A DNA stretch of 64,000 bases from Octopus sinensis. Its lineage: Eukaryota. The position numbers were made by a program, and so were the translations under genes. Below the pieces are notes generated by a model. That model worked only from the letters and a program-made list of their open reading frames with translations. It searched no databases and was not told the DNA's origin. Shown here one piece after another: positions 4,081 through 57,200 of this stretch (position 1 is the first letter of the stretch; each line of letters starts with the position of its first letter). Location of the stretch: contig NC_043007.1 of NCBI RefSeq assembly GCF_006345805.1, positions 21,886,001 through 21,950,000 of the forward strand, written 5' to 3'.

Positions 4081-4347
4081 TCTGAAAACAATTTAACAAT
4101 TCTGCCAACTTAACGATCAACTGCATTATTCGCAGGAGAAAGCATACATTTTATTCTGAAATATTCTTTGTATTTTTAAACTCATCTCACTTTCTCTCTC
4201 TCCTCACCCGTCTCATATTATGATGGTGAATTGTCATCAGTGTCAGATAGAAAGTCTCATAGCATTTATTCCAAAATTCTGTGCCCTGAGTTCAAATCCT
4301 GCAAAGGTTGATTTTGCCTTTCATCCTTTCAGGGTCAATAAAATATA

Positions 4348-5130
4348 TATTTCTTTATTACCCACAAGGGGCTAAACACAGAGAGGACAAACAAGGACAG
4401 ACAAATGGATTAAGTCGATTATATCGACCCCAGTGCATAACTGGTACTTATTTAATTGACCCTGAAAGGATGAAAGGCAAAGTCGACCTTGACGGAATTT
4501 GAATTCAGGACATAGCGGCAGACGAAATACCTATTTCTTTACTACCCACAAGGGGCTAAACACAGAGAGGACAAACAAGGACAGACAAAGGGATTAAGTT
4601 GATTACATCAACCCCAGTGCGTAACAGGTACTTATTTAATCGACCCCGAAAGGATGAAAGACAAAGTTGACCTCGGCGGAATTTGAATTCAGGACATAGC
4701 GGCAGACGAAATACCTATTTCTTTACTACCCACAAGGGGCTAAACACAGAGAGGACAAACAAGGACAGACAAACGGATTAAGTCGATTATATCAACTTCA
4801 GTGCATAACTGGTACTTATTTAATCGAGCCCGAAAGGATGAAAGGCAAAGTCGACCTCATCAGAATTTGAACTCAGAATGTAGCGGCAGACAAAATATCT
4901 ATTTCTTTACTACCCACAAGAGGTTAAACACAGAGGGGACAAATAAGGACACACAAATGGATTAAGTCGATTATATCGACCTCCAGTGCATAACTGGTAC
5001 TTATTTAATCGACCCCGAAAGGATGAAAGGCAAAGTCGACCTCGGCGGAATTTGAACTCAGAACGTAACGGCAGACGAAATACTGCTAAGCATTTGCCTG
5101 GCGTGCTAACGATTCTGCCAGCTCGCCGCC
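4348..5130 (-). mobile_element. tRNA-headed SINE family B, head plus four tandem 184-bp bodies
   Basis: Bodies start at 4348, 4532, 4716, 4900; head at about 5083-5132; 21-bp TSD tttcagggtcaataaaatata at 4327-4347 and 5131-5151. Confidence 0.85.
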
Positions 5131-6140: not shown

Positions 6141-6880
6141 GCAGGAGTTTTACAGCTGGATGCCCCTCCTAACACCAACCACCCAGCTGAGTGGACTTAG
6201 TACTTTTGATGTGGCACAAGCACAGGTGAGGTTAGTTTTGGCAAGGTGTTTACAGCTGGATGCCCTTCCAGACACCAACCACCCAGCTGAGTGGACTTAG
6301 TGCTTTTGACGTGGCACAAGCACAGGTGAGGTTAGTTTTGGCAAGGTGTTTACAGCTGGATGCCCTTCCAGACACCAACCACCCAGCTGAGTGGACTTAG
6401 TGCTTTTGATGTGGCACAAGCACAGGTGAGGTTAGTTTTGGCAAGGTGTTTACAGCTGGATGCCCTTCCAGACACCAACCACCCAGCTGAGTGAACTTAG
6501 TGCTTTTGACGTGGCACAAGCACAGGTGAGGTTAGTTTTGGCAAGGTGTTTACAGCTGGATGCCCTTCCAGACACCAACCACCCAGCTGAGTGGACTTAG
6601 TGCTTTTGATGTGGCACAAGCACAGGTGAGGTTAGTTTTGGCAAGGTGTTTACAGCTGGATGCCCTTCCAGACACCAACCACCCAGCTGAGTGGACTTAG
6701 TGCTTTTGACGTGGCACAAGCACAGGTGAGGTTAGTTTTGGCAAGGTGTTTACAGCTGGATGCCCTTCCAGACACCAACCACCCAGCTGAGTGGACTTAG
6801 TGCTTTTGATGTGGCACAAGCACAGGTGAGGTTAGTTTTGGCAAGGTTTTTACAGCTGGATGCCCTTCCAAACACCAACC
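6141..6880. repeat. 100-bp tandem repeat, about 7 copies, derived from RTE 3' UTR
   Basis: gcaagg(tg)tt recurs at 6241, 6341 ... 6841. Confidence 0.92.
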
Positions 6881-7452
6881 ACTTTACAGTGTAGACTGGG
6901 TGCTTTTAAGTGGCACCTGCACTGACAGGGTCACCAAGTAACTTGCAAGGCAAAAAAAGTTTCTTTTAAGAGGGGAACGGGCATTAGTGGAGGGGATCTT
7001 GTGTCAGATGATGAAAGGTTATAGTGAGACAGAGAGACAGCAACAAGTGTCTTGCTGTACCAACGATCATGCTCGAATGGTGTTTTTAATTTGCCATCGG
7101 CACGGAGGCCAGCTTGTTGCTCTGGCAACGATCTCACTTGTATGGTACTCTTAGTGCTCCACTAGCACTGAGGTCAGTCATCAGATATCATTCAGCTAGT
7201 GTTAGGAACATAAATTGTGACTAAGGTTTGGTGGAAGATTTTAGTTCAGAACTTATGAAAACAAGACATTTGTACTACAGAGCCAGTGATGGTTTCAGCC
7301 AGGTTCGTAATGAAAGGGTTAAACGCACCTCTACATTTGGGCAGATGCACATTAGAAGCAATTGGAAGGGTGTGGATTGAAGGAAATTTAGGCTATTATT
7401 TCTAGCATATAGAGTTACCACATTGAGGTCTCCTCATGTCTTCTGCTGATTC

Positions 7453-13510: not shown

Positions 13511-32451
<18,941 letters not shown>

Positions 32452-34190: not shown

Positions 34191-37100
34191 CTGCATAAAA
34201 GTGACAGGAAACATTTTCTGCAATACACAAACATACTTATTTCTTTACTACCCACAAGGGGCTAAACACAGAGGGGACAAACAAGGACAGACAAACAGAT
34301 TAAGTCGATTACATCGACCCCAGTGCATAACTGGTACTTAATTTATCGAACCTGAAAGGATGAAAGGCAAAGTCAACCTCGGCGGAATTTGAACTCAGAA
34401 CGTAACGGCAGATGAAATACTCATTTCTTTATTACCCACAAGGGGCTAAACATAGAAGAGACAAACAAGGACAGACAAGGGGATTAAGTCGATTATATCG
34501 ACCCAAGTGCGAAACTGGTACTTAATTTATCGACTCCGAAAGGATGAAAGGCAAAGTCAACCTCGGCGGAATTTGAACTCAGAACGTAGTGGCAGACAAA
34601 ATACTGCTAAGCATTTCGCCTGGCGTGCTAACGTTTCTGCCAGCTCACCACCTTGACATATAAAAGTAATGTTTTTCAAATGTGGTGGGAGGGTATGCTC
34701 TGGTGGCTAGTTATTGTAAGGGAGATAATCATATCTCAATCTAGGTTGATGGGAGAAATTGAATTTTAAATCAAAGAGCAAAGAAAAAAATGCATAGAAT
34801 TCTATTATTCTTTTACTCGTTTCAGTCATTTTGACTGCGGCCATGCTGGAGCACCACATTTAGTCAAACGAATCGACTCCAGGAGTTATTCTTTGTAAGC
34901 CTAATAGTTATTCTATCAGTCTCTTTTGCTGAACCACTAAGTTACAGGGACGTAAACACACCAGCATCGGTTGTTAAGTGATGGTGGGGGAACAAACACA
35001 GACACACACATGATAGACTTCTTTCAGTTTCTGTCTACCAAATCCACTCACAAGGCTTTGGTCGGCTCAAGACAATAATAGAAGACACCTGCCCAAGGTG
35101 CCACCCAGTGAGACTGATCCCAGAACCATGTGGTTGGTAAGCAAGCTTTCTACCACACAGCCAATCCTGTACCTATGTATTGTTTTAATTTTTTCCTCCA
35201 CTCATTACAAAGATCTTAAAATTTCTTTAAGTCATTGGTAATATTTCCTTCCAAGTAAAAGTCTGTTGTCTGTTCAGTTTATCACCATACAGAGTCCACA
35301 ATGTTGGTATTAAGAAAGGCACCAAGCTGTAAAAACCATGGCACAGCAGACACTGGAGCTCAATGCAGTCCTCAACCAATTTCACATGTTAACTATGGCA
35401 CTCATCATCATCATCATCGTTTAACGTCCGCTTTCCATGCTAGCATGGGTCGGACGGTTCGACCAGGGTCTGGGAAGCCAGGAAGCTGCGCCAGGCTCCA
35501 GTCTTATCTGGCAGTGTTTCTACAGCTGGATGCCCTTCCAAACGCCAACCACTCCGTGAGTGAAGTGGATGCTTTTTACGTGCCAGGCGAGGCTGGCAAT
35601 GGCCAAGATTGGTTCGTGCTTTTTATGTGCCACCAACAAAGAAGCCAGTCAAGGCAGCGCTGGCATCGGCCACGTTTGGATGGTGCTTTTTATGTGCCAC
35701 CGGCACAGGGATCACAACTACAGTTTCCATTGATTCTTGAAGTTGGTGTACTTGACTCAATAGGTCTCCTCAAGCACAGGGTCGAAACGGTGTTTCTTCA
35801 CTTGCCACCTGCACTGGCAACGGTCAGGTGCCGGTCATAGGGTTTGGTTCAGTTTCGATTTCACTTTCCCCAACAGGTCTTCGCAAACAGAGTTTAGAGT
35901 CCAATGAAGGGAGGTTGGCATGGGTGCCAGTCGTCGGATGTGGCTCGATTTTGAATTCAATTTCGATTTCACTTGCCTCAACAGGTCTTCGCAAATAACT
36001 TCCGGAGGAGCTACCTCAGTGCTGTATGATCTTAACAAAAAAACCCCCAAAATGAAGTAGACTGACATGTAAATTTTGAACCTGTGGAAGGCACACTTGA
36101 CGCCGAAATATCATTCAACCAATTTCGCATGTTAACTATGGCCCTCTTCTATTTACTTCTCGATAACTTCTGGAGGAGTTACCTCAGTCCTATATAATCT
36201 TAACAAACCATTAACCTGTCAAACCACCCAACACATGCCAGCATGGAGCATAGACGTTAAGTAAATGCTGGTGTGTTTACGTCCCTGTAACTTAGTGGTT
36301 CAGCAAAAGAGACTGACAGGCGCAGGAGTGGCTGTGTGGTAAGTAAATTGCTAACCAACCACATGGTTCCGGGTTCAGTCCCACTGCGTGGCATCTTGGG
36401 CAAGTGTCTTCTGCTATAGCCCCGGGCTGACCAATGCCTTGTGAGTGGATTTGGTAGACGGAAACTGAAAGAAGCCTGTCGTATATATGTATATATATAA
36501 GTGTGTGTGTATATGCTTGTGTGTCTGTGTTTGTCCCCCTAGCATTGCTTGACAACCGATGCTGGTGTGTTTACGTCCCCGTCACTTAGTGGTTCGGCAA
36601 AAGAGACCGATAGAATAAGCACTGGGCTTACAAAGAATAAGTCCCGGGGTCGATTTGCTCGACTAAAGGCGGTGCTCCAGCATGGCTGCAGTCAAATGAC
36701 TGAAACAAGTAAAAGAGTAAAAGAGTAAAGAGAGAGAGAATAAGTATTAGGCTTACAAAGAATAACTCCTGGGGTCGGTTTGTTTGACTAATAGATGATA
36801 ATGATTGAAGAGAAACATGTTCCAAATCTAAAAAATAGATTTATTTTTAAAAAACTCAACAAGTTGTTTTATTAAGAAACGGGTGACATTTTATGAAAAA
36901 TATTTTTTAAAAATGATATTTAATTATAACAAGATTATATAAAAAAATATATTAAAAAAATGCATGGGTGCATATTATTTATATTATGTAAGCTAATTAG
37001 GAAAATAAAGTGATATAAATATGGTTCTTAAAATATATATAAATAGATGAAATGAGAGTATCAGCCAAGTGAATAAAAAATTAAATTATAGTTTCAAATC

Positions 37101-37506: not shown

Positions 37507-39673
37507 CTACAATAGAATAAAGAGAAATTGGTTGGTCATCATTACATAATTTTGCAAAAGAAGTTGAAGACATATATATTCTTCAATAAAAAAACATATA
37601 ATATATAGAAAAGAGCAAGATTTATTAAAATCATTTTTAAACATTTTCAACATTTCAACGTGCTAGCAGGGTGCAAAGAGCACCATCCGAGCGAGATCGT
37701 TGCCAGAGCGGCTAACCAGCTTGCATGCCAGTGGCACATAAAAGGCACCATTTGAGCGTGATCGTTACCAGCATCGCCTTACTGCCCAAGGTGCCATGCA
37801 GTGGGACTGAACCCAGAACCATGTGGTTCGCAAGCAAGCTACTTACCACACAGCCACTCCTACGCCTATATAATTATAAAAAATAATAATAATGAAATTA
37901 ATTGTATACAGTGCTCAGGTGCACCACAACTTGTCAGAAAGTGCGTATAAAGTACATGCAGTAATGTAGAAATGTCTGGAAAGCGAACAATGTATGAGTC
38001 AGATACATGCCTGTGTGTATGGAGGGGAGAAAATCAGGTGTAGTGTTGGCGAATCTCAGAAAGCATGGAAGTTTTGAAGGATGCAGTGCTCCGACAACTA
38101 ACAACTGATGCCGGCAGTTTGTTCCATGCTTCAGCAACTCTCAGCGTGAAAAAATGTTTCCTGAAGTCATGGGAGCTGTGCTGTTTTCTTACTTTGTAAA
38201 TATTATGTAGCCTTTGATTTAAAGGAGGTAAAAAGTTTTAGTATTGTTGTTGTCGTTTAACTCCCAAGCCAGCCGTGGCCACCCACACTTCTTTTCTGAA
38301 GATATAGTATGGCAAGGAATTCTATGCAGTTCCTTTTTCAAAGATGGTCTCCCATCTCCTTTGTTGATTTGCTCATGTCGTTATAGCTGCTAATAGCAGG
38401 GAACATGTTAGGAATTAGAGATAAAAAACACTGGCCATCTTTCGGTATGAGAACCATAACTGTCACATGTTTTTGTTTACATTTGAAGAAGAAGATCGTT
38501 ACTCTCCGTAAAGTTGTTTTTTTTATATATGGGAGGTTAGGGTTAGGATTAGGGTTAGTGTTAGGGTTAGGGATGGGAGAAAAGGGTTTCTTTTTTCTTC
38601 AGATAGTGTTAGGGTTAGGGGTGGGGGAAAAGGGTTTCTTTTTTCTTCAGATAGTGTTAGGGTTAGGGTTTGTGTTGGGGTTAGTGTTAGGGTTAGGGGT
38701 GGGAGAAAAGGGTTTCTTTTTTCTTCAGATAGTGTTAGGGTTTGTGTTAAGGTTAGGGTTAGGAGAAAAGGGTTTCTTTTTTCTTCAGATAGTGTTAGGG
38801 TTAGGGTTTGTGTTAAGGTTAGTGTTAGGGTTAGGGGTGGGGGAAAAGGGTTTCTTTTTTTTTTCAGGTAGTGTTAGGGTTAGTGTTAGGGTTAGGGGTG
38901 GGAGAAAAGGGTTTCTTTTTTCTTCAGATAGTGTTAGGGTTTGTGTTAAGGTTAGGGTTAGGAGAAAAGGGTTTCTTTTTTCTTCAGATAGTGTTAGGGT
39001 TAGGGTTTGTGTTAAGGTTAGTGTTAGGGTTAGGGGTGGGGGAAAAGGGTTTCTTTTTTTTTTCAGGTAGTGTTAGGGTTAGTGTTAGGGTTAGGGGTGG
39101 GAGAAAAGGGTTTCTTTTTTCTTCAGAAATGTAAACAAACCCACGTGGGTTTATAATTGGCAATTATGGTACTTGTACCGTAAGGTGGCCAAAATACTTT
39201 TAAATTACTTACCTCCTGTGACATTCGGTAATATGTATTAACATAAGCTAAACCACCTTGTATTCCTTCAATAAATATTACTGCAATGATGATCCAAAAG
39301 TTCTTTATGTAATGAAAGAGAACTTGTGTCTGAAGAATGGCCACAATGCCCATCTGGAAAGGAAAAAATTTTTTTTAAATAAATAAAAGCAAATCAAGGA
39401 AGAACATATTTTACCGTTATGGTCTACTACTGTAATACAATCCAAGGGGGTGAGGAAAAGTTCCTGGCTTTGGGTAAAAGAAAATACAGGAAAATCAGTT
39501 ACAGGCACTGGAGTGGCTGTGTGGTAAGTAGCTTGCTAACCAACCACATGGTTCCGGGTTCAGTCCCACTGCGTGGAATCTTGGGCAAGTGTCTTCTGCT
39601 ATAGCCCCGGGCCGACCAATGCCTTGTGAGTGGATTTGGTAGACGGAAACTGAAAGAAGCCTGTCGTATATAC

Positions 39674-39740
<67 letters not shown>

Positions 39741-42700
39741 TTGTGTGTCTGTCCCCCTCGCATTGCTTGACAACCGATGCTGGTGTGTTTACGTCCCCGT
39801 CACCTAGCGATTCAGCAAAAGAGACCGATAGAATAAGTCCTGGGCTTACAAAGAATAAGTCCCGGGGTCGATTTGCTCGACTAAAGGCGGTGCTCCAGCA
39901 TGGCCGCAGTCAAATGACTGAAACAAGTAAAAGAGTACTTATAATTTTATTCAACATAGTCCTCCCTCTTAGATTCACACACTTATTGTTGAGGTCTCTC
40001 AGTTTTTCTAAGCCCTGTCAAAGAACTCAGAAGTTTTGGGCCCCTGACCAAGCCTTTTGTGATACCCTTAAAACCAGGAACTTTTCAGCAACCCCTCATA
40101 TTTATATATTTTCTTTTTATAGGCCGTTCTATATATTTTGTGTTTTTATGTGCATTTATATTTTTCACCTTCTGTGCTTTTTTATTTGTATTCCTTTCAT
40201 ATGTCGAAGGGCATGGTAATGTTTATATCTGATAAAATGTATGGAAGCATGGTGTATGACTAGAATTAGATGTTTGTTCTCTAATCAATGATCTTTTTTT
40301 TGTCTCTATCTCAATTTCATTTCAGCACTTTTTTTTTGCAGTCCTATAAACCCCTATAAAAAGAGGCAAAAAATTATTTCTTGCTATACACACATAAACA
40401 TATACATATATATATATATACATATATACATATGCTGTAGAAACTCTGCCAGATCAGACTGGAGCCTGGTGCAGCCCCTGGCTTCCCAGACCCCAGTCGA
40501 ACCGTCCAACCCGTGCTAGCACAGAAAACGGATGTTAAACGATGATGATGATGATGATATACATATATATATATACACACATATACATATATATATATAC
40601 ACATATACATATATATATATACACACATATACATATATATATACACATATACATATATATATACACGCATATACATATATACACATATAATATACATATA
40701 CACATATACATATACACATACATATATATATACACACATGCACAGATATACAAGGGGATGCTGAAAAGTTCCTGGCTTTGAGTAAAAGAAAATACAGGAG
40801 GATCAGTTAATTATGATTTTATTCAGCATATTCCTCTCTCTGGTTCACACACTTATTGCATTGGTCTTTCAGTTTTTCTTATTTCTTGATTTACCACAAG
40901 GGGCTAAACATAGAGGGGAGAAACAAGGACAGACAGACAAACATCGATTAATGATGATATACACCGCCGATAGTTGTTGTTGACAAACAACGGCAGTAAT
41001 TTTATTCAGCTGAATACACATCATTGATTGGTTGAAATTACCGAAATAGGACAAATTTAACAAAAAATAACTTTGTAAATATAAAGTTTTCTCAGAAACG
41101 CTAAGAGTAAAAGATGTTTTATATGACACATTCTACCAGTATACGAAGTTTGAAAGTGTTTTGTTACAAAAAATTATTTTCTAAATCTGTCGGTCAAAAG
41201 GTAAAGATCCAGGAAGAGGGAATAGGAGGAAGGAGAAGACAGAAGAGGAATGACACATTAAAAGCAAAAAGAATCAGACAAAAGTCATACAACTCTTTAC
41301 TTTCTCTCTTACTTGTTTCAGTCATTTGACTGCGGCCATGCTGGAGCACCGCCTTTAGTCGAGCAAATCGACCCCGGGACTTATTCTTTGGGAGCCCAGT
41401 ACTTATTCTATTGGTCTCTTTTGTCGAACCGCTAAGTGACGGGGACATAAACACACCAGCATCGGTTGTCAAGCAATGCTAGGGGGACAAACACAGACAC
41501 ACAAACACATATATATACATATATACGACGGCTTCTTTCAGTTTCCGTCTACCAAATCCACTCACAAGGCTTTGGTCGGCCCGGGGCTATAGCAGAAGAC
41601 ACTTGCCCAAGATGCCACGCAGTGGGACTGAACCCGGAACCATGTGGTTGGTTAGCAAGCTACTTACCACACAGCCACTCCTGCGACAACTGTAGAGAAT
41701 ATCATTGTCTTGAGCATTTAATTTTTTTGTTCTCGATGTGAAAGGAAAGCAGGATCTTTTCGGTTTGAACGGCAGTTTTTTAAAATAATTTCCACGTAAC
41801 TAAACACTCTTAAACTTCGTATACTGGTAGAATGTGTTTATAAAATATCTTTTTCTCTTGGCTTTATTGAGAAAATTCTATAGTTCGGAAGATATTTGTT
41901 GTTGCTTTTTTCTGCTTCAATTTCTGCAATTTCAACCAATCAATGACGTCTATTGAGGTAAAAAACATTCTGTGCCGTATGAATATGTCCCTCATTTAAG
42001 AAACAGATTGGGTTTATTTACATTTGTGAAGAAAAAAAGATACCCTTCCCCCCCACCCCTAACCCTAAAACAGATTGAAATGCAATAGATCGATACTAGG
42101 GGTCATAATTATGGGTGACAATTTCATATGATACCACTAGAAAAAACTGCCGTTCAAACCGAAAAGATCCGGAAAGCATTACCTGAAAGGAATTACTTGA
42201 AGACGATAAATGCTGGACAGAGAAAAGTATAAAAAGGAGAATGAAATTTGTACCTGTAATATAACAGGCACCCAGAGGAATTTCAAATGGAAAAGGTTTA
42301 CAGATGAGCGGGCAATAAAAACACCAATTTGGTAATCAACTTGATACCTACAAGATCAATAAAATAGATCAATAAGTCAATACAGAATAAAATTGGGAAC
42401 AAAATAAGCATTACATTTGACAAAGTAATCTGAATGATTAAGATTGGATTGAATCGTTGTTATGAATTAATTATCACCTGTTTCTCTCTCTCTGTCTCAC
42501 TATAACCTTTCATCAGCTGACACAAGATCACCTCCTCCAATGCCCCCTCTCCACTCAAAAGATTTTTCTGTCTTGCAAAGTATTTGGTGACCCTGTCAAT
42601 GCAGGTGCCACTTAAAAAGCATCCAGTGTACACTGTAAAGTGGTTGGCATTTGGAAGGGCATCCAGCTGTAAAAACCTTGCCAAAACTGACCTCGCCCTG

Positions 42701-45700
42701 TCTTTGGTGACCCTGTCAGAGTAGGTACCACTTAAAAAGCATCCAGTGCACACTGTAAAGTGGTTGGCATTTGGAAGGGGATCCAGCTGTAAAAACCTTG
42801 CCAAAACTGACCTCGCCTGGTCCTTGGTGACCCTGCAAGTGCAGGTGCCACTTAAAAAGCACCCAGTGCACACTGTAAAGTGGTTGGCGTTTGGAAGGGC
42901 ATCCAGCTGTAAAAATCCTGTCAAAACAGTCACATCTGGTGCAGGCTTCCACCTGGCTGGCTCCTATCAAATCTTCCCACCCATGCTAGCATGGAAAGCG
43001 GATGCTGAATGATGATGATGATGATGCATTATCTTGTAGCTTTGAAATTTAAATGATGTGGTCGTTTATTTTTTGATGTGATTTGTTTGTTTATTATGAT
43101 GGTGGAGGACAAACAGAAGCACACACACACACACTATTGATTTCGAGCAAGCTCTGTCTAGAAGAGTGCTTTTCAAACTTTTTGCTGGAGTGGAACCCTA
43201 AGGAAACATTCCACTGGCTCGAGGAACCCCTGTGCAATAATTTAATAGTCTTATGCACACATATCTGCACAGGAAAATTAAAAATTACTGCCGATTTTAG
43301 CAGTTTTGTAACTTCTTGCGGAACCCCTGGACTGTACTGGCGGAACCCTGGTTGAAAACCACTAGTCTAAAAACACACAGGATTTTGAAAGGGTATTTGA
43401 AGAGACAAAAGATCAGTAAAAATTGCTCACCAACGATATTGTTCAGCAGATTTTAACCATATATTGTTGAAATAAAGAAGTTCAAACTGTAAAGACAAAG
43501 GGAAAAAAAATCGTTAAAGCAAATAATTAACTTCCATAATTACTCAGTACATATTATCACCATCAATACTACATGTCAGAAGTCTTCCCAATAAGGGCTG
43601 ACCTGGAGCTATACAACAACACAAGCAGTGGCCACACAACCAATGAGAAATAGCAGCTAAATCTCCCTCAAATTACATGTCTTTAAAAAAATAAAAGGAT
43701 ATATTCGATAATACAGTTCTACGTACCCCTAAATAGATAGGGTGGTCACACCTCTTTTACTCTTTTATTTGTTTCAGTCATTTGACTGCAGTCATGCTGG
43801 AGCACCGCCTTTAGTCGAGCAAATCGACCCCAGGACTTATTCTTTTGTAAGCCTAGTACTTATTCTATCAGTCTTTTTTTTGCCGAATTGCTAAGTTACG
43901 GGGACGTAAACACACCAGCATCAGTTGTCAAACAATGTTGGTGGGGACAAACACACACATATGAAAATATTTTGGCAAATTAAATTTAAATGTTGAAGTG
44001 AATCCAACGGATTTTGTGTGTTTTTAAATAGCTTATAAACACCTTCCATGCTGCAACTGTTATATATATATGTGTGTGTATACATATATATATACACACA
44101 CACACACACACTGTAAATAATGACTTTTTAGTTTACTTTGTTATTTATAAAATGTACAGTCATATACTGTGGAGGTGCAATGGCCCAGTGGTTAGGGCAG
44201 CGGACTCGCGGTTGGAGGATCACGGTTTCGATTCTCAGACCGGGCGTTGTGTGTGTTTATTGAGCGATAACACCTAAAAGCTCCACGAGGCTCTGGCAGG
44301 GTGGGGTGGCGACCCTTGTTGTACACTTTCGCCCCAACTTTCTCTCACTCTCTCTTCCTGTTTCTTGAGTAACGCTGCAATGGACTGGCATCCCGTCCAG
44401 CTGGGGGGGGAACACATATGCCACAGAAACCGGGAAACCGGACCCATGAGCCTGGCTAGGCTTGAAAAGGGTGACGTTTATCGTATGTATACACAATAAA
44501 CTAAAAGCGTGCTTGATACAAACATTGGAGTTTCATGTAATTTTTTTGAAGACTAGCAAGAAGATAGATTTTAATTCCTTTAACTTGATGATTCTGGCCC
44601 ATCTCATCAAACTGGTACCTTAAAAAAATTGTAGGTAACGCTGTGATGGACTGGTGTCCTGTCCAGCTGGGGGGAACACATATGCCACAGAAACTGGGAA
44701 ACTGGACCCATGAGCCTGGCTAGGCTTGAAAAGGGCGAAAGACAGTCATATACTAGCAGATGGGAGAGAAAAGGAAACCACATATTCAAACAGTTACACT
44801 ACAGATACAATAAAATAAAGAAAGCTGAGACAGAGTAAGTGAGAATGTAATAGAGGGAAAAATAAATTGTTTTGTCTTACCAATGTTTGATTAATATAAT
44901 ACTCAGCAATATAGACCAAACACAATGGTAACATATACTTCACAACTGCCTAAAAAATAGAAAAACGAAAAATATTTAAACCTGAAGAAGCCAGATCAAT
45001 ATTTAACATAGAAATAGTAGCAAAAATTTCAATATAATTAAGTAATAGGTATAGGCACGGCTGTATGCTTTTTGTGTTTAGCTTTGCAGCCATGTGGTTT
45101 AGGGTTCTGTTCCAATGTGTGACACCTTAACCCTGGCACGTAAAGAGCACCATCCGATCGTGGCCGTTTGCCAGCCTCGCCTGGCCCCCGTGCCGGTGGC
45201 ACGTAAAAAGCACTATCCGATTGTGGCTGTTGCCAGCCTCGCCTGGCTCCTGCACCGGTGGCACATAATAAGCACCCACTACACTCGCATTAGGAAGGGC
45301 ATCCAGCTGTAGAAACACTGCCAGATCAGACTGGGCCTGGTGCAGCCTCCTGGCTTCCCAGACCACAGTCGAACCATCCAACCCATGCTAGCACGGAAAG
45401 CGGACATTAAACGATTACGTTTTATCAAGTGTAATGCTTATCGATTTGAATTAATCATACATTATTTTGTAGTTTTGAGATTTCGTTGACATGAGTGTTT
45501 ATTTTCAAGAACAATATTGTAGGGTAAGTGTGAGAGGCAGGATAGGCCCAATTTAAATGCTAGAGTGTTAAGCAAATGACTTCTGCCATAGCCGCAAGCT
45601 GACCAATGTCTTGTGAGTGGACTTGTTACATGGGAACTGTATAGAAACCGGATCTTTACCTTTTGACCGACAGATTTAAAAGACAATTTTTTGTAACTAA

Positions 45701-48230: not shown

Positions 48231-51200
48231 ATCTGTGGTTGTCCCCCTAGCATTGCTTGACAACCGATGCTGGTGTGTTTACGTCCCGTCACTTAGCGGT
48301 TCGGCAAAAGAGACTGATAGAATAAGTACTGGGCTTACAAAGAATAAGTCCCGGGGTCGATTTGCTCGACTAAAGGCGGTGCTCCAGCATGGCCGCAGTC
48401 AAATGACTGAAACAAGTAAAAGAGTAAAGAATAAACAAACAATACCATTATATTGTAGGAGCACTCCGTCGGTTACGACGACGAGGGTCCCAGCTGACAC
48501 AATCAACAGAACAGCCTGCTCATGAAATTAACGTGCAAGTGGCTGAGTATTCCACAGACGTGCATACCCCTAACGTAGTTCACAGGGAGATTCAGCATGA
48601 CACAGAGTGTGACAAGGCTGGCCCCTTCAAATACAGGTACAACTCATTTTTGCCAGCTGAGTGGACTGGAGCAACGTGAAATAAAGTGTCTTGCTCAAGG
48701 ACACAGTGCGTCGCTGGGAATTGAACTCACGACCTTACAATCGTGAGCCGAATGCCCCTAACCACTAAGTCATGCACCTTCACCATTATATTGTAGTAAG
48801 TTGTTATAAACAGTTTTTTTAACAAATAATGGATGAAATTAGGTTATGGAAAGCTCAACTGTGCATTTAGGACCACGGTGTGAGTTTTTGAGATATTTTA
48901 TTTTGGTGGTGGGGGGTGTGTCTTATATGCCATCATATACAGTATTTAATTAATCATTAATAATTACTTACAGTTTAGTAGCATACCGTGGGGAATATCA
49001 GTACCAATTGTTTGTAAAACTGGAGGCTTTTGCAACAGGACAAAGTAACTGGAAAGAATTACAGTGAAAAATAGGATAAAGTAACTGGAAAGAATTACAG
49101 TAAAAATAGGACAAAGTAACTGGAAACAATTGCAGTAAAAACAGGACAAAGTAACTGGAAACAATTACAGTAAAAATAGGACAAAGTAACTGGAAACAAT
49201 TACAGTAAAAATAGGACAAAGTAACTGGAAACAATTACAGTAAAAATAGGACAAAGTAACTGGAATCAATTACAGTAAAAATAGGACAAAGTAACTGGAA
49301 TCAATTACAGTAAAAATAGGACAAAGTAACTGGAAACAATTGCAGTAAAAACAGGACAAAGTAACTGGAAACAATTGCAGTAAAAACAGGACAAAGTAAC
49401 TGGAAACAATTACAGTAAAAATAGGACAAAGTAACTGGAAACAATTACAGTAAAAATAGGACAAAGTAACTGGAAACAATTACAGTAAAAATAGGACAAA
49501 GTAACTGGAAACAATTACAGTAAAAATAGGACAAAGTAACTGGAAACAATTACAGTAAAAATAGGACAAAGTAACTGGAATCAATTACAGTAAAAATAGG
49601 ACAAAGTAACTGGAAACAATTACAGTAAAAATACAGATTTAGTTTACCATATTTAGATTAACAATTAATATTACAATATTTGAGGGCAGTGAATCAACCA
49701 AAAACCAATCGAGCGCCAGACTAAATGCTCTTCAGTATTTAGTTGAGTCCTTCTATATTTTAAATTTAATGTGTTTGGCACCAACTCACCTGAAAATGCC
49801 TCTGGTTTCATGATAGAAAACCTTTTTTTTTAAATTTTTTTTTTACTTGTTTCAGTCATTTGACTGCGGCCATGCTGGAGCACCACCTTTAGTCGAGCAA
49901 ATCGACCCAAGGACTTATTCTTTGTAAGCCTAGTACTTATTCTATCGCTCTTTTGCCGAACCGCTACATTTCATGGATTTAAACACACCAGCATCGGTTG
50001 TCAAGCCGATGTTGGGGGGACAAACAGACACAAACACACACACACATGTATATATATCCATATATATGACAGGCTTCTTTTCAGTTTCCGTCTACCAAAT
50101 CCACTCACAAGGCTTTGGTTGGCCTGAGGCTATAGTAGAAGTCACTTGCCCAAGGTGCCACACAGTGGGACTGAACCTGGAACGATGTGGTTGGTAAGCA
50201 AGCTACTTACCACACAGCCACTCCTGCGCCTACTTATTTTAAAGTGTTTGTATTTAAATGACAACTATCCATTGTAAGAATCTTTAGTTAATTGTGTTCC
50301 AAACATCAGCTAAATAATAAATAAGTCAGTTATTTTACTAAATCATTTCTCATTTATGCTCCCAACCACATGGTTCTGGGTTCAGTCCCATTGCATGGAA
50401 CCTTGGGCAAGTGTCCTCTGATATAGCCTTGGGCTGACCAAAGCCTTGTGATTGAGTAGAAGTTCTCATTGTGTGTGTACATGTATAAGAAAGTGCTTGT
50501 GCCCTCCTAACAGAGAGGAGGGGAATGAATTTCTTTAGAAACATGGTTACAGAAGGGTTAAACCCAGTCAGAATTTACTTTGCCTTTAATCCTCCTGTGG
50601 TCATCATCATCATCATTTAACGTCCGTTTTCCATGCTAGCATGGGTTGGCCGGTTCGACTGGGGTCTGGGAAGCCATGGAGGCTGCGCCAGGCTCCAGTT
50701 TGATCTGGAAATGTTTCTACGGCTGGATGCCCTTCCTAACGCCAACAACTCTGTGAGTGTAGTGGGTGCTTTTTACGTGCCAGGGGAGGCTGGCAGCGGC
50801 CACAATCGATTGGTGCTTTTTATGTGCCACCAGCACAGAAGCCAGTCAAGGTGGCACTTAAAAATCAATAGTATAGTCCTCAGCTATTACTAAATGTGAA
50901 TAAATAGTGTAGTTGCAATTATTAATAATTCAACTTATCCTTGCTCATCACTCACCCACACAGCCACACGCAATTATGGGATGACAATGATTATGACTAG
51001 ACATGCATTTGCTTCTTATTTCTTTACTACCCACAAGGGGCTAAACACAGAGGGGACAAACAAGGACAGACAAACGGATTAAGTCGATTATATCGACCCC
51101 AGTGCGTAACTGGTACTTATTTAATTGACCCTGAAAGGATGAAAGGCAAAGTCGACCTTGGCAGAATTTGAACTCAGAATGTAATGGCAGACGAAATAAA

Positions 51201-54200
51201 AAAGCATTTCGCATGGCATACTAACATTTCTTATTTCTTTATTGCCCACAGGGGGCTAAACATAGAGGGGACAAACAAGGACAGACAAACGGATTAAGTG
51301 GATTACATCAACCCCAGTGCGTAACTGGTACTTAATTTATCAACCCTGAAAGGCATAGTTGACCTTGGCAGAATTTGAACTCAGAGCATAACAACAGACG
51401 AAATACCTATTTCTTTACTACCCACAAGGGGCTACACATAGAGGGGACAAACAATGACAGACAAACGGATTAAGTCAATTATATTGACCCCAGTGCGTAA
51501 CTAGTACTTAATTTATCAACCCTGAAATGATGAAAGGCAAAGTTGACCTCGGCGGAATTTGAACTCAGAACATAAAGACAGACAAAATACCGCTAAGCAT
51601 TTCGCCCAGCATGCAAACGTTTCTGCCAGCTCGCTGCCTTATGCTTTTGCTTTTTGACTTCATAGGTTTTTTTACTATCAGTAATAAAGGATTATTTTTA
51701 ATGTTAACCGGGATTAAAATGTGATCCCTAGACAGGGGTCTAGAGAAAAGAGAGACTTACCTGAATGCAAAAATGACAGGAATGACAAGCATTACCAGAA
51801 TCGTGTGACGAGGGGAGAGATTAAGCATGGTGAGTCCTGCATAAGAGAGAGCACCAAAAAGTCCAGCCCCTCCAGTTCCAGAGGACCATGTTGAGACAAC
51901 ATTTCTGGAAAGCATAAACGAAATATGAAAAAATATTAGTGCATTAAATACAAAATCCATGACAATTAAAATTTGAACGGAAAAAAAAGAAGAAATTTAA
52001 ATGCAACAGGACAAAGTAACTGGAAACAATTACAGTAAAAATAGGACAAAGTAACTGGAAAAAATTACAGTAAAAATAGGACAAAGTAACTGGAAAAAAT
52101 TACAGTAAAAATAGGACAGAGTAACTGGAAAAAATTACAGTAAAAATAGGACAAAGTAACTGGAATGTGATTTTTCTTAAAGATAGATGTTTAATTAAGA
52201 TTAAGCTATAACCAATATCATTATCATCATCTGAACGTTCAACTTTTCCATGCTTGGATGGGTTGGACAGAGTTTATTGAAACACATTTTCTACAGCTGG
52301 GTGCCCTTCCTGTTGCCAACCTTCACCTGCTTCAAGCAAGGTAATATTTCCCCATGGTTAGACATGTTTTCACAGAATATTGGAAATAAACGACATTCAT
52401 TTACAATGATCATGTGATGTCAAAACAAGGAGACACACACACACATGCACACAAAATGGGCTTTTTTTTCAGTTTCTGTTTACCAAATCCATTCACAAAG
52501 CTTTGGTTGGCTCTGAGCTATAATAGAAGACAGTTGCCCAATATGCCATGCAGTGGGACTGAACCCTAAACTATTGTATTTGGGAAGCAAACTTAAATAC
52601 ACAGCCACATCTGCACCAGGTAAATATTGAAATCTGATACATTGAGACAGGTGGAATGGTTGGTGTTAGGAAGGGCATCAAGCTGTAGAAACCATGCCAG
52701 TTCAGATTGGATCCTGGTGCAATGGCCCAGTGGTTAAGGCAGCGGACTCGCGGTCGGAGGATCGCAGTTTCGATTCCCAGACTGGGCGTTGTGTGTTTAT
52801 TGAGCGAAAACACCTAAAAGCAACACGAGGCTCCGGTGGGGGGTGGCGGCGATCCCTGTTGTACTCTTTCACCCCAACTTTCTCTCACTCTTTCTTCCTG
52901 TTTCTTGAGTAACTCTGCGATGGACTGGTGTCCCATCCAGCTGGGGGGAACACATATGCCACAGAAACCAGGAAACCAGGCCCATGAGCCTGGCTAGGAT
53001 TGAAATGGGCGACGTTTATCGTTTTATATGCTGAAGAACCTCTCCTAATGACAATTCCATACCTCTTTCTCTTTTCTCTCATTCTCCAGTGAGCACAGAA
53101 TCAGATTTCATGAATACTTACTTGTGAAAAAATGAAGTTAAACTCAGGAATGTAACTTCTCCTAATCCAGAGCTGAAGCTGGCAAAACAAACACCTGTCC
53201 AAAAACAAAATATATAATTATATAGTAGCCAGCAATAATAAATCTCTGAACGAGATGTAAACAGTAACTGCACGACAATGTCAGGTATACTAGCCATCTC
53301 AATATGGCTAACCACTAAGGGTGGGTGTTACTGTAGCTTTTAGCCCCAGGAGATCATCGTCTCCAGCTGGCTTTAGGCACACTTTCTTTGCTCTTATGAT
53401 ATTTGCAAAGGGAGGTCATCCCTCTCTCGTAAACCTAAGAGATACACACGGACTAGAAACAGCAGTCCGTGAGTATCACTTAGGTTTATGAGAGAGGGAT
53501 GACCTCCCTTTGCAAATATCATAAGAGCACAGAAAGTGTGCCTAAAGCCAGCTGGAGACGATGATCTCCTGGGGCTAAAAGCTACAGTAACACCCACCCT
53601 TAGTGGTTAGCCATATTGAGATGGCTAGTATACCTTACATATATAGTAGCCACTGTCCTATTATTATATAAAGATTGTTTTTGAGTTTCATACTTTTGTA
53701 TTGTACACACAAATTTGAAACAACTCTGAAGAATTCTTTCAAGTTTCTAAAGCACATTCAATAGTGAAGCCTGACAGTACAATCTCTAAAGGAAAGACCA
53801 TGGACATCTTCCATCAGTGCAGTTAAGAACCTAGCTCCCTTTTCAAGCCTAACCAAGCTCATGGGTCCGGTTTCCCGGTTTCTGTGGCGCATGTGTTCCC
53901 CCCAGCTGGACGGGACGCCAGTCCATCGCAGCGTTACTCAAGAAACAGGAAGAGAGAGTGAGAGAAAGTTGGGGCGAAAGAGTACAAGAGGGGTCGCCAC
54001 CACCCCCTGCCGGAGCCTAGTTGAGCTTTTAGGTGTTTTTGGAAAAAAGAATGTTCATGCAAATAGAAGCACTGTTTCATAGGGTTCACAATGGCTTCTG
54101 TGTAAAACTTATTAGGAGTCTTCAATATGTATTTATACACACAGTTCATCACTAGCATCATTCAAAGTCTCTTTTCTATGCTGGCATGGGTTGGATGGTT

Positions 54201-57200
54201 TGACAGGAGCTGGTCAACCGGAGAGCTACCCAGGCTACAATTGTCTCTCTTGATATGGTTTCTATGGTTGGATGCCCTTCCTAATGCCAACCACTTTGCA
54301 GTGTGTACTGGGTGCTCTTTAGATGACACTGACACAAGTGCTTTATATGTGCACCGGCACATGATACAAGGAACAGGCATGGGTGCCTTACATGTGGCAC
54401 TCGCATGGGTGCTTTACATGTGGCACTCGCATGGGTGCTTTATATGTGGAATTGGCATGAGTGCCTTACATGTGGGACTGGCATGGGTGCCTTACATGTG
54501 GGACTGGCATGGGTGCCTTACATGTGGCACTGGCATGAGTGCTTTACACGTGGCACTGGCATGAGTGCTTTACATGTGGCACCGTCATGGGTGCTTTACA
54601 TGTGGCACCGGCATGGGTGCTTTACATGTGCCACTGGTATGGGTGCTTCACATGTGCCACTGGCATGGATGCTTTACATGTGGCACTGGCATGGGTGCTT
54701 TACATGTGGCACTGGCATGGATGCTTTACATGTGGAACTGGCATGGGTGCTTTACACGTGGCACTGGCACGGGTGTTTTACATGTGGCATTAGCATGAGT
54801 GCTTTACATGTGGCACTAGCATGGGTGCTTTACAAGTGACACTGGCAAGGGTGCCTTGCATGTGTCACTGGCATGGGTGCTTTACATGTGGCATTGGCAT
54901 GAGTGCTTTACACGGCACTTGCATGAGTGCTTTACACGTGGCACTGGCATGGGTGCTTTACATGTGGCACTGGCATGGGTGCTTTACATGTGGCACTGGC
55001 ATGGGTGCTTTACATGTGGTACTGGCATGGGTGCTTTACACGTGCCACTGGCATGGGTGCTTTTTTCATGAAACCTGCAAAGGCGCTTCACACTGTTGGT
55101 TTAAAAAAAAGTATCTAGCCAATAAACAGGGGATTTTTAGGGGGTTGTACCTCTGAGAAACCTAAACCTTGTGTAGAATACACACCCCTTCTCTAACTTG
55201 AGTCATGCATAATTAAGCCAGCAGCACCTAGTCGAACAAACACTTCCGCGCATGCGTAATACAATAACGGTGATGTTCTTAACTGTTATATGGGAATGTA
55301 AATATGTTTGCAAATTGTTTTTGTTACATGTTATTCTGTGTTCTGAAAACTTTTATTTTAATAAATGTTGCTTACTGCAAGTTATGGATGATTCTTTTAT
55401 GACTTCATTGCTTTCAGGCTTAGCTTAAGGTATTTTTGCGCCTGGCATCACAAAATGCGTTTGAATAAAAACATTGCTGGACAGCAAATAGAGACTCGGA
55501 CATTGTTAGAAAATATTTTTCATTTTTAACCTCGTATATAGTACACACTAGGGATTTTGACCTTTAAAATTTGGGGATAATGCGGGTTAAACTCGAGGAT
55601 TTACGGTAATGGTAGTTAGTTTCAGAAAGTAGAAATTTGAGGAAAGCAGTAAAGAAGTTATTTGAATAATATGACTGAATATACAAGCAAATATGGTATT
55701 GAGAAGAATTTTTTTAAAAAATCAATAATTACCAATAATACTGAAGACAACATTTGAAGCTACTGAAACTAGTATGAAACTGAGTGTAGTTGTAGCGATG
55801 ATTACTGTCACCTTTAAGCTGAAATAGTAAGAAAAAAAAATAACGTTAAATGTAGCTGTTAATTAATATGTTAATGAGGTGGCAAGCTGGCAGAAACGTT
55901 AGCACGCTGGACGAAATGCTTAGCGGTATTTCGTCTGTCGTTACATTCTGAGTTCAAATTACGCCGAGGTATGGCACCTTAGGCAATTGTCTTCTACTAT
56001 AACCCCACACAGCCAACAAAGCCTTTTGAATGGATTTGGTTGGCAGAAACTGAAAGAAGCCTGTTGTGTGCATGTGTGTGTTGTATGTGAGTGTGTATAT
56101 ATATATACAAGGCGCAGGAGTGGTCGTGAGGTAAAGAACCTTGCTTCCCAACTATATAGTACCAGGTTCAGTCCTACTGCATGGCACCTTGAGTAAGTGT
56201 CTTCTACTATAACTTTGGGCTGATCACTTGAACTTACCTTTGTTATTACTATATATATATATATATATATATAGCTAAAACTTGAAAATCGCCATTACCA
56301 TTACGATTCTGCAATTTAAACTCCCAATTCAACTTACTTTCTTCTTCAATTTCAACTCCCGGTCGATGCCCGCAGCAAGTTCTTAAAAATTTATCTTACT
56401 ATTTTTATTCGTTGTTAGTACGTTTATTCATACATTGATAACTTGATTCGTCTTACCCATCTCATTCGCTACGAAAATTTAACCTTTTAGGCTACTTTCA
56501 AGCCTTCGCCATAACTTGATTTATCTTTCCTATCTCTCTCTCTACAAAATTTAACCTTAGGCTACCTCAAGCCGTAATCCCATCTCTTCCCATCTTTCCG
56601 CCATTGGCGGTGCGCCCGCCCCCCACCCCCACCACCAATACCGGTGAACTCTGTTCTCACCAACACCACCACCACCAATACGGTGAACACTGTTCTCACC
56701 CCCCACCACCAATACCAGTATACCCTGATCTCACCATCTACACCGGATACGCCTTACTCATCTACACCGGGTACGCCCTACTCCCTCCCCCTCCCCCCAC
56801 TACCCCTTCTCCTCATATGCTTTCACTGTGAAAAGAGAGCTGCTAGCGCCATAGCTCATCAACTGCCCACCGATCTTACGCTTCCTCCTGACACTGCCTC
56901 ATTCCGACCATCCCCTTTAGTACCCTCCCGCCTCGTAATATCCTACGTTTTTATTTCTTAGGAACCTTCACCAACCCCTTCCTGCCATCGTTCCTCCATA
57001 CCCCAACCTTCCCACTGGTTGCTCCCCTATATTACCCGCCTCAACTGGACCCCCCCTCCCCAACTCAACTCTAGAATATCTGTATTTCTTTCCTCTACCT
57101 AATTACGTTACTCAGTGACGATAAATGCTGTGACTACAAAGACCCGGGCTGCTTTCTGCAGCAATTCCACATACCCCCTACCCATTCTAAGTACCCCGGA

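Follow-up and report, generated by a model that had tools for sequence, protein, structure and literature searches.

A probably young minisatellite spanning a CLN3 splice acceptor in octopod DNA reiterates the 3' splice site 17 times

How the spliceosome chooses among several competent 3' splice sites is still argued, with branch-point scanning, exon definition and first-come-first-served recognition as the main ideas; the scanning model proceeds from the branch point to the first AG (Smith et al., 1989, 1993, cited in PMC1636351). The choice of 5' splice sites has been dissected with the help of arrays of identical donors, such as those of F7, IFI6 and CBS, and on this donor side there are documented cases of minisatellites that begin with a unit lying across an exon/intron boundary (PMC1557585). 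In intron 7 of F7, a 37-bp unit is repeated 5-9 times, and the exon-proximal donor alone is used in vivo, the pseudo-sites being functional (Borensztajn et al., 2006, PMC1557585). Intron 2 of IFI6 (6-16) carries 25 pseudo-donors, of which the two next to the authentic site are used along with it, and CBS intron 13, with 15-20 repeats, likewise uses the authentic site and two pseudo-sites, while in LMNB2 and PDGF, with units of 100 bp and 81 bp, the authentic site alone is used (PMC1557585). A natural array on the acceptor side was not found in full-text literature searches, where only donor-side cases appeared, which does not prove that none exists. Here we describe a 64,000-nucleotide stretch of contig NC_043007.1 (positions 21,886,001 to 21,950,000; hereafter the window, whose own numbering is used throughout), in which a minisatellite, array A, reiterates the acceptor of a CLN3 (battenin) exon. 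Array A is the acceptor-side form of the boundary-spanning minisatellites known so far on the donor side. We consider it probable that it is a young, lineage-specific minisatellite derived from the CLN3 acceptor, that splicing mainly uses the exon-proximal site 49048, with the other sites largely silent decoys, and that the effect is neutral or slightly deleterious.

Array A extends from 49037 to 49633 on the minus strand and comprises 17 tandem 35-nt units, the last of which measures 36 nt. Tandem Repeats Finder (TRF) delimited the same interval, with a period of 35, 17.0 copies, 97% matches and a score of 1101. A pattern search with the 35-mer recovered 16 copies at up to 3 mismatches, the 17th unit being the 36-nt one, while 100 dinucleotide shuffles gave an expectation of 0. 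Read on the minus strand, the unit is TATTTTTACTGTAATTGTTTCCAG/TTACTTTGTCC (here and below, the slash marks the splice junction) and contains a putative branch point, a pyrimidine tract, the CAG and 11 nt from the start of the 77-nt exon. The array thereby holds 17 CCAG/TTAC sites at a spacing of 35 nt; one added C in the final unit (TTTTTCACTG) lengthens the last interval to 36 nt. The authentic site lies within the array, as unit 17 consists of the real CAG and the 11 exon nucleotides, leaving 16 decoys. Each unit carries 0-2 substitutions, and CCAG/TTAC is kept in all 16 decoys. Array A is thus a minisatellite in the usual sense, with head-to-tail units in the range of about 10-100 bp, and a boundary-spanning one, the terminal unit covering the intron/exon boundary. 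The initial annotation had described 17 tandem, near-identical CLN3 acceptors; TRF, the unit table and the shuffle control agree with it on this point, but it had overlooked that the same unit recurs in the upstream intron, in a second array, array B. The pattern search found no copies of the unit in the 64-kb window other than those of arrays A and B.

Variant units (2, 8-9, 10-11, 15, 16 and 17) are distributed in blocks rather than periodically. In units 8, 9 and 15 (49319-49388 and 49109-49143, minus strand), TG...GCAA replaces TA...GTAA, and both changes agree with the exon sequence of the window (CCTGTTGCAA). These units may reflect patchy conversion between exon and array, or two coincidental transitions.

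The gene was identified by tblastn with CLN3 protein queries, which placed the CLN3 exons in order on the minus strand between about 63.7 and 37.4 kb. The orthologue-guided splice model of the visible part (37378-63658, minus strand) comprises 13 GT-AG introns between 14 coding exons; the gene's 5' exons fall past the window end. Its modelled product of 407 amino acids scores 421 bits against Pfam PF02487 (cut-off 31; E 5.7e-126), and its top database matches are the battenins of Octopus bimaculoides (91.5% identity) and, next, Argonauta hians, which bears out the earlier assignment to CLN3 and, judged from these matches, marks the DNA as octopod. All 14 exons have collinear counterparts in the O. 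bimaculoides locus, to which they are 87-100% identical in nucleotide sequence. By this collinear exon structure and the PF02487 score above the gathering cut-off, the gene qualifies as the orthologue of battenin. Pairwise comparison of the two species gave a ratio of nonsynonymous to synonymous substitution rates (dN/dS) of 0.19 at a dS of 0.17, indicating that the gene is intact and constrained. Three exons matter for the splicing question, all on the minus strand. The authentic 77-nt exon (48972-49048) has the acceptor AATTCTTTCCAG/TTACTTTGTCCTGTTGCA and the donor ACT/GTAAGT. The preceding 144-nt exon (51761-51904), with the donor TTCAG/GTAAGT in phase 2 (last nucleotide 51761), faces the 17 acceptors of array A. 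The 73-nt exon before that (53122-53194), with the donor CAA/GTAAGT (last nucleotide 53122), would supply the decoys of array B. Together, the 73-nt and 144-nt exons amount to 217 nt, which we take to be the combined size of human CLN3 exons 7 and 8, as presumed from the common deletion c.461-280_677+382del; on that assumption, the acceptor amplified in the array would belong to the orthologue of exon 9. The O. bimaculoides battenin isoforms X1-X3 differ at the N-terminus only and are uninformative on the array junction.

To obtain the coding outcome of each acceptor, donor 51761 was joined in silico to every CAG of array A, and donor 53122 to those of array B. Site 49048 yielded the normal product, matching O. 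bimaculoides, Argonauta and a decapodiform transcript. Use of site 49084 would add 36 nt (49049-49084, minus strand) and thereby 12 amino acids, in frame and stop-free; it is the single extra C of the last unit that restores this frame and abolishes a CTG-TAA stop. The other 15 decoys (49119-49609, minus strand; first nucleotides 49609, 49574 and so on in 35-nt steps to 49119) all gave premature stops. Twelve of these sites produced SYFVLFLL followed by a stop, and the three that enter a 'GCAA' variant unit (49399, 49364 and 49154) shifted the frame and reached a later stop. Premature stops likewise resulted at all five array B sites. In each of the 15 array A and five array B cases the stop precedes the last exon junction by more than 50 nt, with six exons still to follow. 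The simulation reproduced what had been translated by hand in the initial annotation, i.e., normal battenin from the proximal site, a hydrophobic in-frame 12-mer from the second, a stop after YFVLFLL from sites crossing a typical unit and a frameshift to a stop in the case of a CAA variant.

The sites are near-identical, as had been proposed, but they are not 'many equals'. The uninterrupted pyrimidine run up to position -3 measures 8 nt at both 49048 and 49084 (TTCTTTCC), compared to 5 nt in typical array A units, where position -8 is occupied by G, and 4 nt in three 'GA' units, so that the authentic tract is better than that of 14 of the 16 decoys. The putative branch point of each unit is a yUnAy match, TTTAC except in unit 17, where it reads TTCAC, and the A of this match falls at -17; a second candidate is the exon-derived GTTAC of the preceding unit, some 33 nt upstream of each AG. 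The surroundings differ as well: a real exon and donor follow the authentic site only, and decoys 2-16 have neither ancestral intron upstream nor ancestral exon downstream. We propose that the exon-proximal site 49048 would be the predominant acceptor, because it has a real exon and donor behind it (exon definition), because its tract is better, and because the donor-side precedents point in the same direction. Site 49084, with an equally good tract, would be the likeliest minor site, and its product with 12 additional residues would probably be harmless or tolerable. The remaining 15 sites of array A and the five of array B would mostly be silent decoys, any leak into them giving premature-stop transcripts that would be cleared by nonsense-mediated mRNA decay (NMD). 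On balance, the arrangement would be neutral to slightly deleterious, and as a side effect the amount of productive CLN3 mRNA might depend on copy number.

Several points weigh against this proposal. From -24 to +11 the decoys are identical to the annotated O. bimaculoides acceptor (RefSeq model), and decoy 1 (49609) alone still has all of the ancestral intron in front of it, with whatever branch point that intron had, which together suggests that the decoys are intrinsically competent. Three array B sites have an 8-nt pyrimidine run, due to a G to T change at -8, compared to 6 nt at the true acceptor of that intron. An RNA structure that would conceal the decoys was considered and rejected, as the minimum free energy of the array region is like that of shuffled sequences (z -0.14). 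A scanning mechanism, moving from the branch point to the first AG, would favour an upstream site. Early experiments with duplicated acceptors conflict in their outcome (summarised in PMC1557585), and the precedents are all on the donor side, not the acceptor side. Site usage is, finally, entirely inferred.

Much of this also speaks for a passive splicing quantitative trait locus or hypomorph, in which the 16 and five competent modules would drain CLN3 pre-mRNA into NMD in a length-dependent manner, as a side effect of the expansion. Such a drain would fit decoys that match a working orthologous acceptor and are unmasked by structure, the full ancestral intron in front of decoy 1 and the strong tracts in array B; also the extra C, which renders 49084 in-frame and stop-free, would make sense if that site is truly used. 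On the other hand, a strongly leaky allele should face selection in a gene that is intact at a dN/dS of 0.19, the authentic tract beats most decoys, and the donor-side precedents display near-exclusive exon-proximal use even among identical copies (PMC1557585). We therefore regard this drain as the most serious competitor to predominant use of 49048, though an unlikely one.

Units 16 and 17 have a C in place of the G at -8, a change that invites a reading as compensatory strengthening of the true acceptor. This candidate was downgraded because array B shows an independent change of that position to T, to the advantage of a harmful decoy. Compensation through this substitution and the extra C of the last unit is only suggestive, and mutation bias explains both changes at -8.

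The origin of the array was addressed by comparison with the CLN3 loci of O. bimaculoides (L001) and Argonauta hians (L002), neither of which contains a 35-bp array. At the orthologous acceptor, O. bimaculoides has a single unit (17 in the window compared to 1) that matches the array consensus over 39 nt with 100% identity, reading ...TTTG TATTTTTACTGTAATTGTTTCCAG/TTACTTTGTCC TATTGCAAAAG. The 5' flank of array A aligns to that of the single unit, and the 919-nt O. bimaculoides intron is collinear with the 2712-nt intron of the window up to the AG of unit 1. The ancestral arrangement, as in O. bimaculoides, was thus one TATTTTTACTGTAATTGTTTCCAG/TTACTTTGTCC followed by TATTGCAA, so that the ancestral 35-nt segment was flanked by the 4-nt direct repeat TATT. 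The absence of the array from both O. bimaculoides and Argonauta indicates that it is young and lineage-specific. About six independent changes have accumulated over the 595 nt of array A (about 1%), compared to a dS of 0.17 between the species, and by this measure the array would be much younger than the split from O. bimaculoides, unless it has been homogenised. Slippage or unequal exchange at the TATT repeats may have produced the first duplication, and later growth would have proceeded through unequal exchange, as suggested by variant units standing in adjacent pairs. The junction peculiar to the array is GTCC/TATTTTTACTG, here with the slash at the border between units, and a 32-mer across it had no match in a metagenome scan.

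Array B, a 160-nt insert in the preceding CLN3 intron (52004-52163, minus strand), lies about 2.9 kb upstream of array A and consists of a partial unit (CCAGTTACTTTGTCC), four full 35-nt units and TGTTG; TRF reported it as 52008-52165, 35 bp x 4.5 copies at 97%. Its five CAG/TTAC sites (first nucleotides 52159, 52124, 52089, 52054 and 52019) precede the true acceptor at 51904 by 115-255 nt. The insertion is clean: O. bimaculoides has ...CTCATT, TTATAA and CATTTAAAT in succession, and the window has ...CACATT, the 160-nt insert and CATTTAAAT, the insert thus taking the place of 6 nt. Array B ends in ...CCAG/TTACTTTGTCCTGTTG(CA), i.e., 16-18 nt of the 77-nt exon start compared to the 11 in the unit, and this includes the synonymous exon G specific to the window (CCTGTTG; O. 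bimaculoides has CCTATTG), indicating that array B was copied from the exon-proximal end of array A. As its last unit keeps the ancestral TTGTTTCCAG, the copying appears to predate the TTCTTTCCAG found in array A units 16 and 17. Array B also has private variants of its own. Both junctions of the insert show 2-nt microhomologies, and together with the 6-nt replacement these suggest that array B formed, after array A, by templated break repair. A poison exon made of an array B acceptor and a downstream donor was discarded on inspection, as no GTRAGT-like donor lies between array B and the exon.

The presence of two arrays in one gene, in a window where other minisatellites and elements resembling short interspersed elements (SINEs) abound, could also be read as a 35-bp mobile unit that landed twice in CLN3, its likeness to the exon being coincidental. 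This origin was rejected and appears scarcely credible: in O. bimaculoides the unit occurs once, as the native acceptor at the orthologous position, array B holds 5-7 exon nucleotides beyond the unit, and the 64-kb window contains no further copies. In addition, the exon part of the unit encodes the conserved SYFV, which the window has in common with Argonauta, with a decapodiform and with human.

Assemblies are prone to error in tandem arrays, and the array or its copy number might be unreal. We give this only a slight chance, as the variant units occur block-wise and without periodicity, array B with its private variants stands 2.9 kb away, and the flanks of both arrays align cleanly to the orthologue; moreover, errors of this type usually collapse repeats and seldom create them.

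The initial annotation had further offered the array as a built-in, copy-number-tunable NMD switch, i.e., an evolved coupling of alternative splicing to NMD (AS-NMD) that would set CLN3 dosage. The raw material exists, as 15 of the 17 array A and all five array B sites led to premature stops in silico. Regulated poison exons are typically deeply conserved, whereas the array is missing in O. bimaculoides and Argonauta and, with about 1% independent changes, would be very young. Neither a regulator-binding motif nor a structure was found by folding and by an Rfam scan of the window, the latter without any family match, and the region is dense in unrelated minisatellites. The copying of the unit into a second intron and the richness of the window in minisatellites point to repeat dynamics rather than to design. 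The proposed switch thus found no support, and we consider an evolved one very improbable.

Each unit contains a donor-like ACT/GTAATT, or ACT/GCAATT in three variants, 21 nt past its CAG (49063-49624, minus strand); the same ACT/GTAATT is seen in the array B units (52034-52139, minus strand). CAG/TTACTTTGTCCTATTTTTACT/GTAATT accordingly delimits a potential 21-nt micro-exon that would be in frame, add YFVLFLL and skip the stop, so that decoy CAGs paired with ACT/GTAATT might yield one or more cassettes of seven residues each. Frame and the absence of a stop were verified in silico, the hexamer GTAATT serves as the intronic part of the gene's own exon 5 donor at 55733, and introns of 50-540 nt would be left to reach 49048. 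Against this, the in-unit site matches the consensus at 6 of 9 positions and has neither G at -1 nor G at +5, and donors lacking both are seldom functional, as judged by U1 pairing. Exons of 21 nt normally require dedicated enhancers, and the hydrophobic heptads would fall at the end of a transmembrane segment. Protein searches retrieved no protein with such an isoform, which is weak evidence given erratic retrieval. The same-species battenin was not returned by queries with the C-terminal half, the N-terminal half or a junction-centred 114-mer, which is equally weak evidence; for the latter two queries, the word-indexed search also missed the O. bimaculoides and Argonauta battenins despite long exact shared stretches. 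Such cassettes are accordingly highly unlikely in our view.

A bolder reading treats the acceptor module as a functional element that proliferates locally. It takes the two arrays, which precede two consecutive CLN3 exons, jointly, either as a copy-number rheostat on productive splicing, acting via decoys and NMD, or as a generator of in-frame 21-nt micro-exons via GTAATT. We rate this as improbable; if true, the locus would be the first natural acceptor-side counterpart of F7 and IFI6 with a measurable effect on expression.

The surroundings of the gene are rich in repeats, with 37 TRF rows at a score of at least 100 in the 64-kb window. A complex minisatellite at 38556-39127 (plus strand), made in part of TTAGGG-like motifs of the telomere type (GTGTTAGGGTTAGGG...GGGTTTCTTTTTTCTTCAG), lies downstream of the 141-nt CLN3 exon, with its start 86 nt from the donor of that exon. 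Another, at 54376-55063 (26 bp x 26.5; GGCATGGGTGCTTTACATGTGGCACT), lies in the CLN3 intron between the exons at 55733 and 53194 and touches no splice site. A dispersed element of about 176-184 bp (…TTTCTTTACTACCCACAAGGGGCTAAACACAGAG…), probably SINE-like, forms short tandem blocks at 4341-5083, 18363-18727, 34227-34605 and 51232-51591, the last of these inside a stretch of about 620 nt of CLN3 intron that has no O. bimaculoides counterpart. A tandem repeat family of 100-120 bp (…ACAGCTGGATGCCCTTCC…) is present in both orientations at 6149-6882 and 42583-42927 of the window and at 16609-16930 of L001; its occurrence in the orthologous CLN3 intron of O. bimaculoides identifies it as an older, shared repeat, unlike the acceptor array. 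Minisatellites arise commonly in this region, and as an octopus genome holds many arrays and many splice sites, it is in itself unsurprising that one of the arrays should fall across an acceptor; array A has most probably come about as a by-product of a genome prone to repeats.

What the locus offers is a record of a splice signal that was amplified and then seeded into a neighbouring intron, and a set of 17 complete modules of branch point, tract and AG with a built-in contrast: the distal copy has the ancestral intron context, the proximal copy the ancestral exon context, and the middle copies have neither. The single-copy sister species O. bimaculoides serves as a control. The earlier suggestion that the array is a natural test of splice-site choice is thus reasonable, in line with the use made of its donor-side precedents (PMC1557585). 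Spliced alignments that join one repeat to another are prone to error (PMC10632439). Should the decoys be silent, the array would be only an attractive curiosity of a repeat-rich genome.

Among described systems, NAGNAG tandem acceptors (PMC2699507) resemble the CLN3 array in presenting several AGs at one exon start, with some in-frame products. There, the AGs are 3 nt apart and share a branch point and tract, whereas in CLN3 they are spaced by 35-36 nt and each has its own tract and putative branch point; array A thus falls outside the NAGNAG class. With AS-NMD poison exons, the CLN3 decoys have in common premature stops far upstream of the last junction, more than 50 nt in the simulated transcripts. 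Where poison exons are regulated, they are conserved and their regulators are known, whereas the CLN3 array is lineage-specific, its decoy sites lacking counterparts in O. bimaculoides and Argonauta hians. Closer in design are globin minigenes with duplicated 3' splice sites (refs 40-42 in PMC1557585), in which, as in CLN3, complete modules compete for one donor; these are artificial two-copy constructs in mammalian cells with conflicting outcomes, whereas the CLN3 array is natural, has 17 copies and belongs to a cephalopod. The closest relatives are the boundary-spanning minisatellites. In F7, as in array A, the terminal unit lies over the exon/intron boundary, the authentic site is reiterated within the intron and most of the pseudo-sites would yield aberrant products. 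F7, like IFI6 and CBS, reiterates a donor downstream of its exon, and array A an acceptor upstream of its exon; F7 has 5-9 copies and measured usage, array A 17 copies and predicted usage. The use of authentic and proximal pseudo-sites in IFI6 and CBS parallels the use of 49048 and 49084 predicted here. Both of these are donor-side, human arrays for which no ectopic daughter array has been reported, whereas CLN3 has array B.

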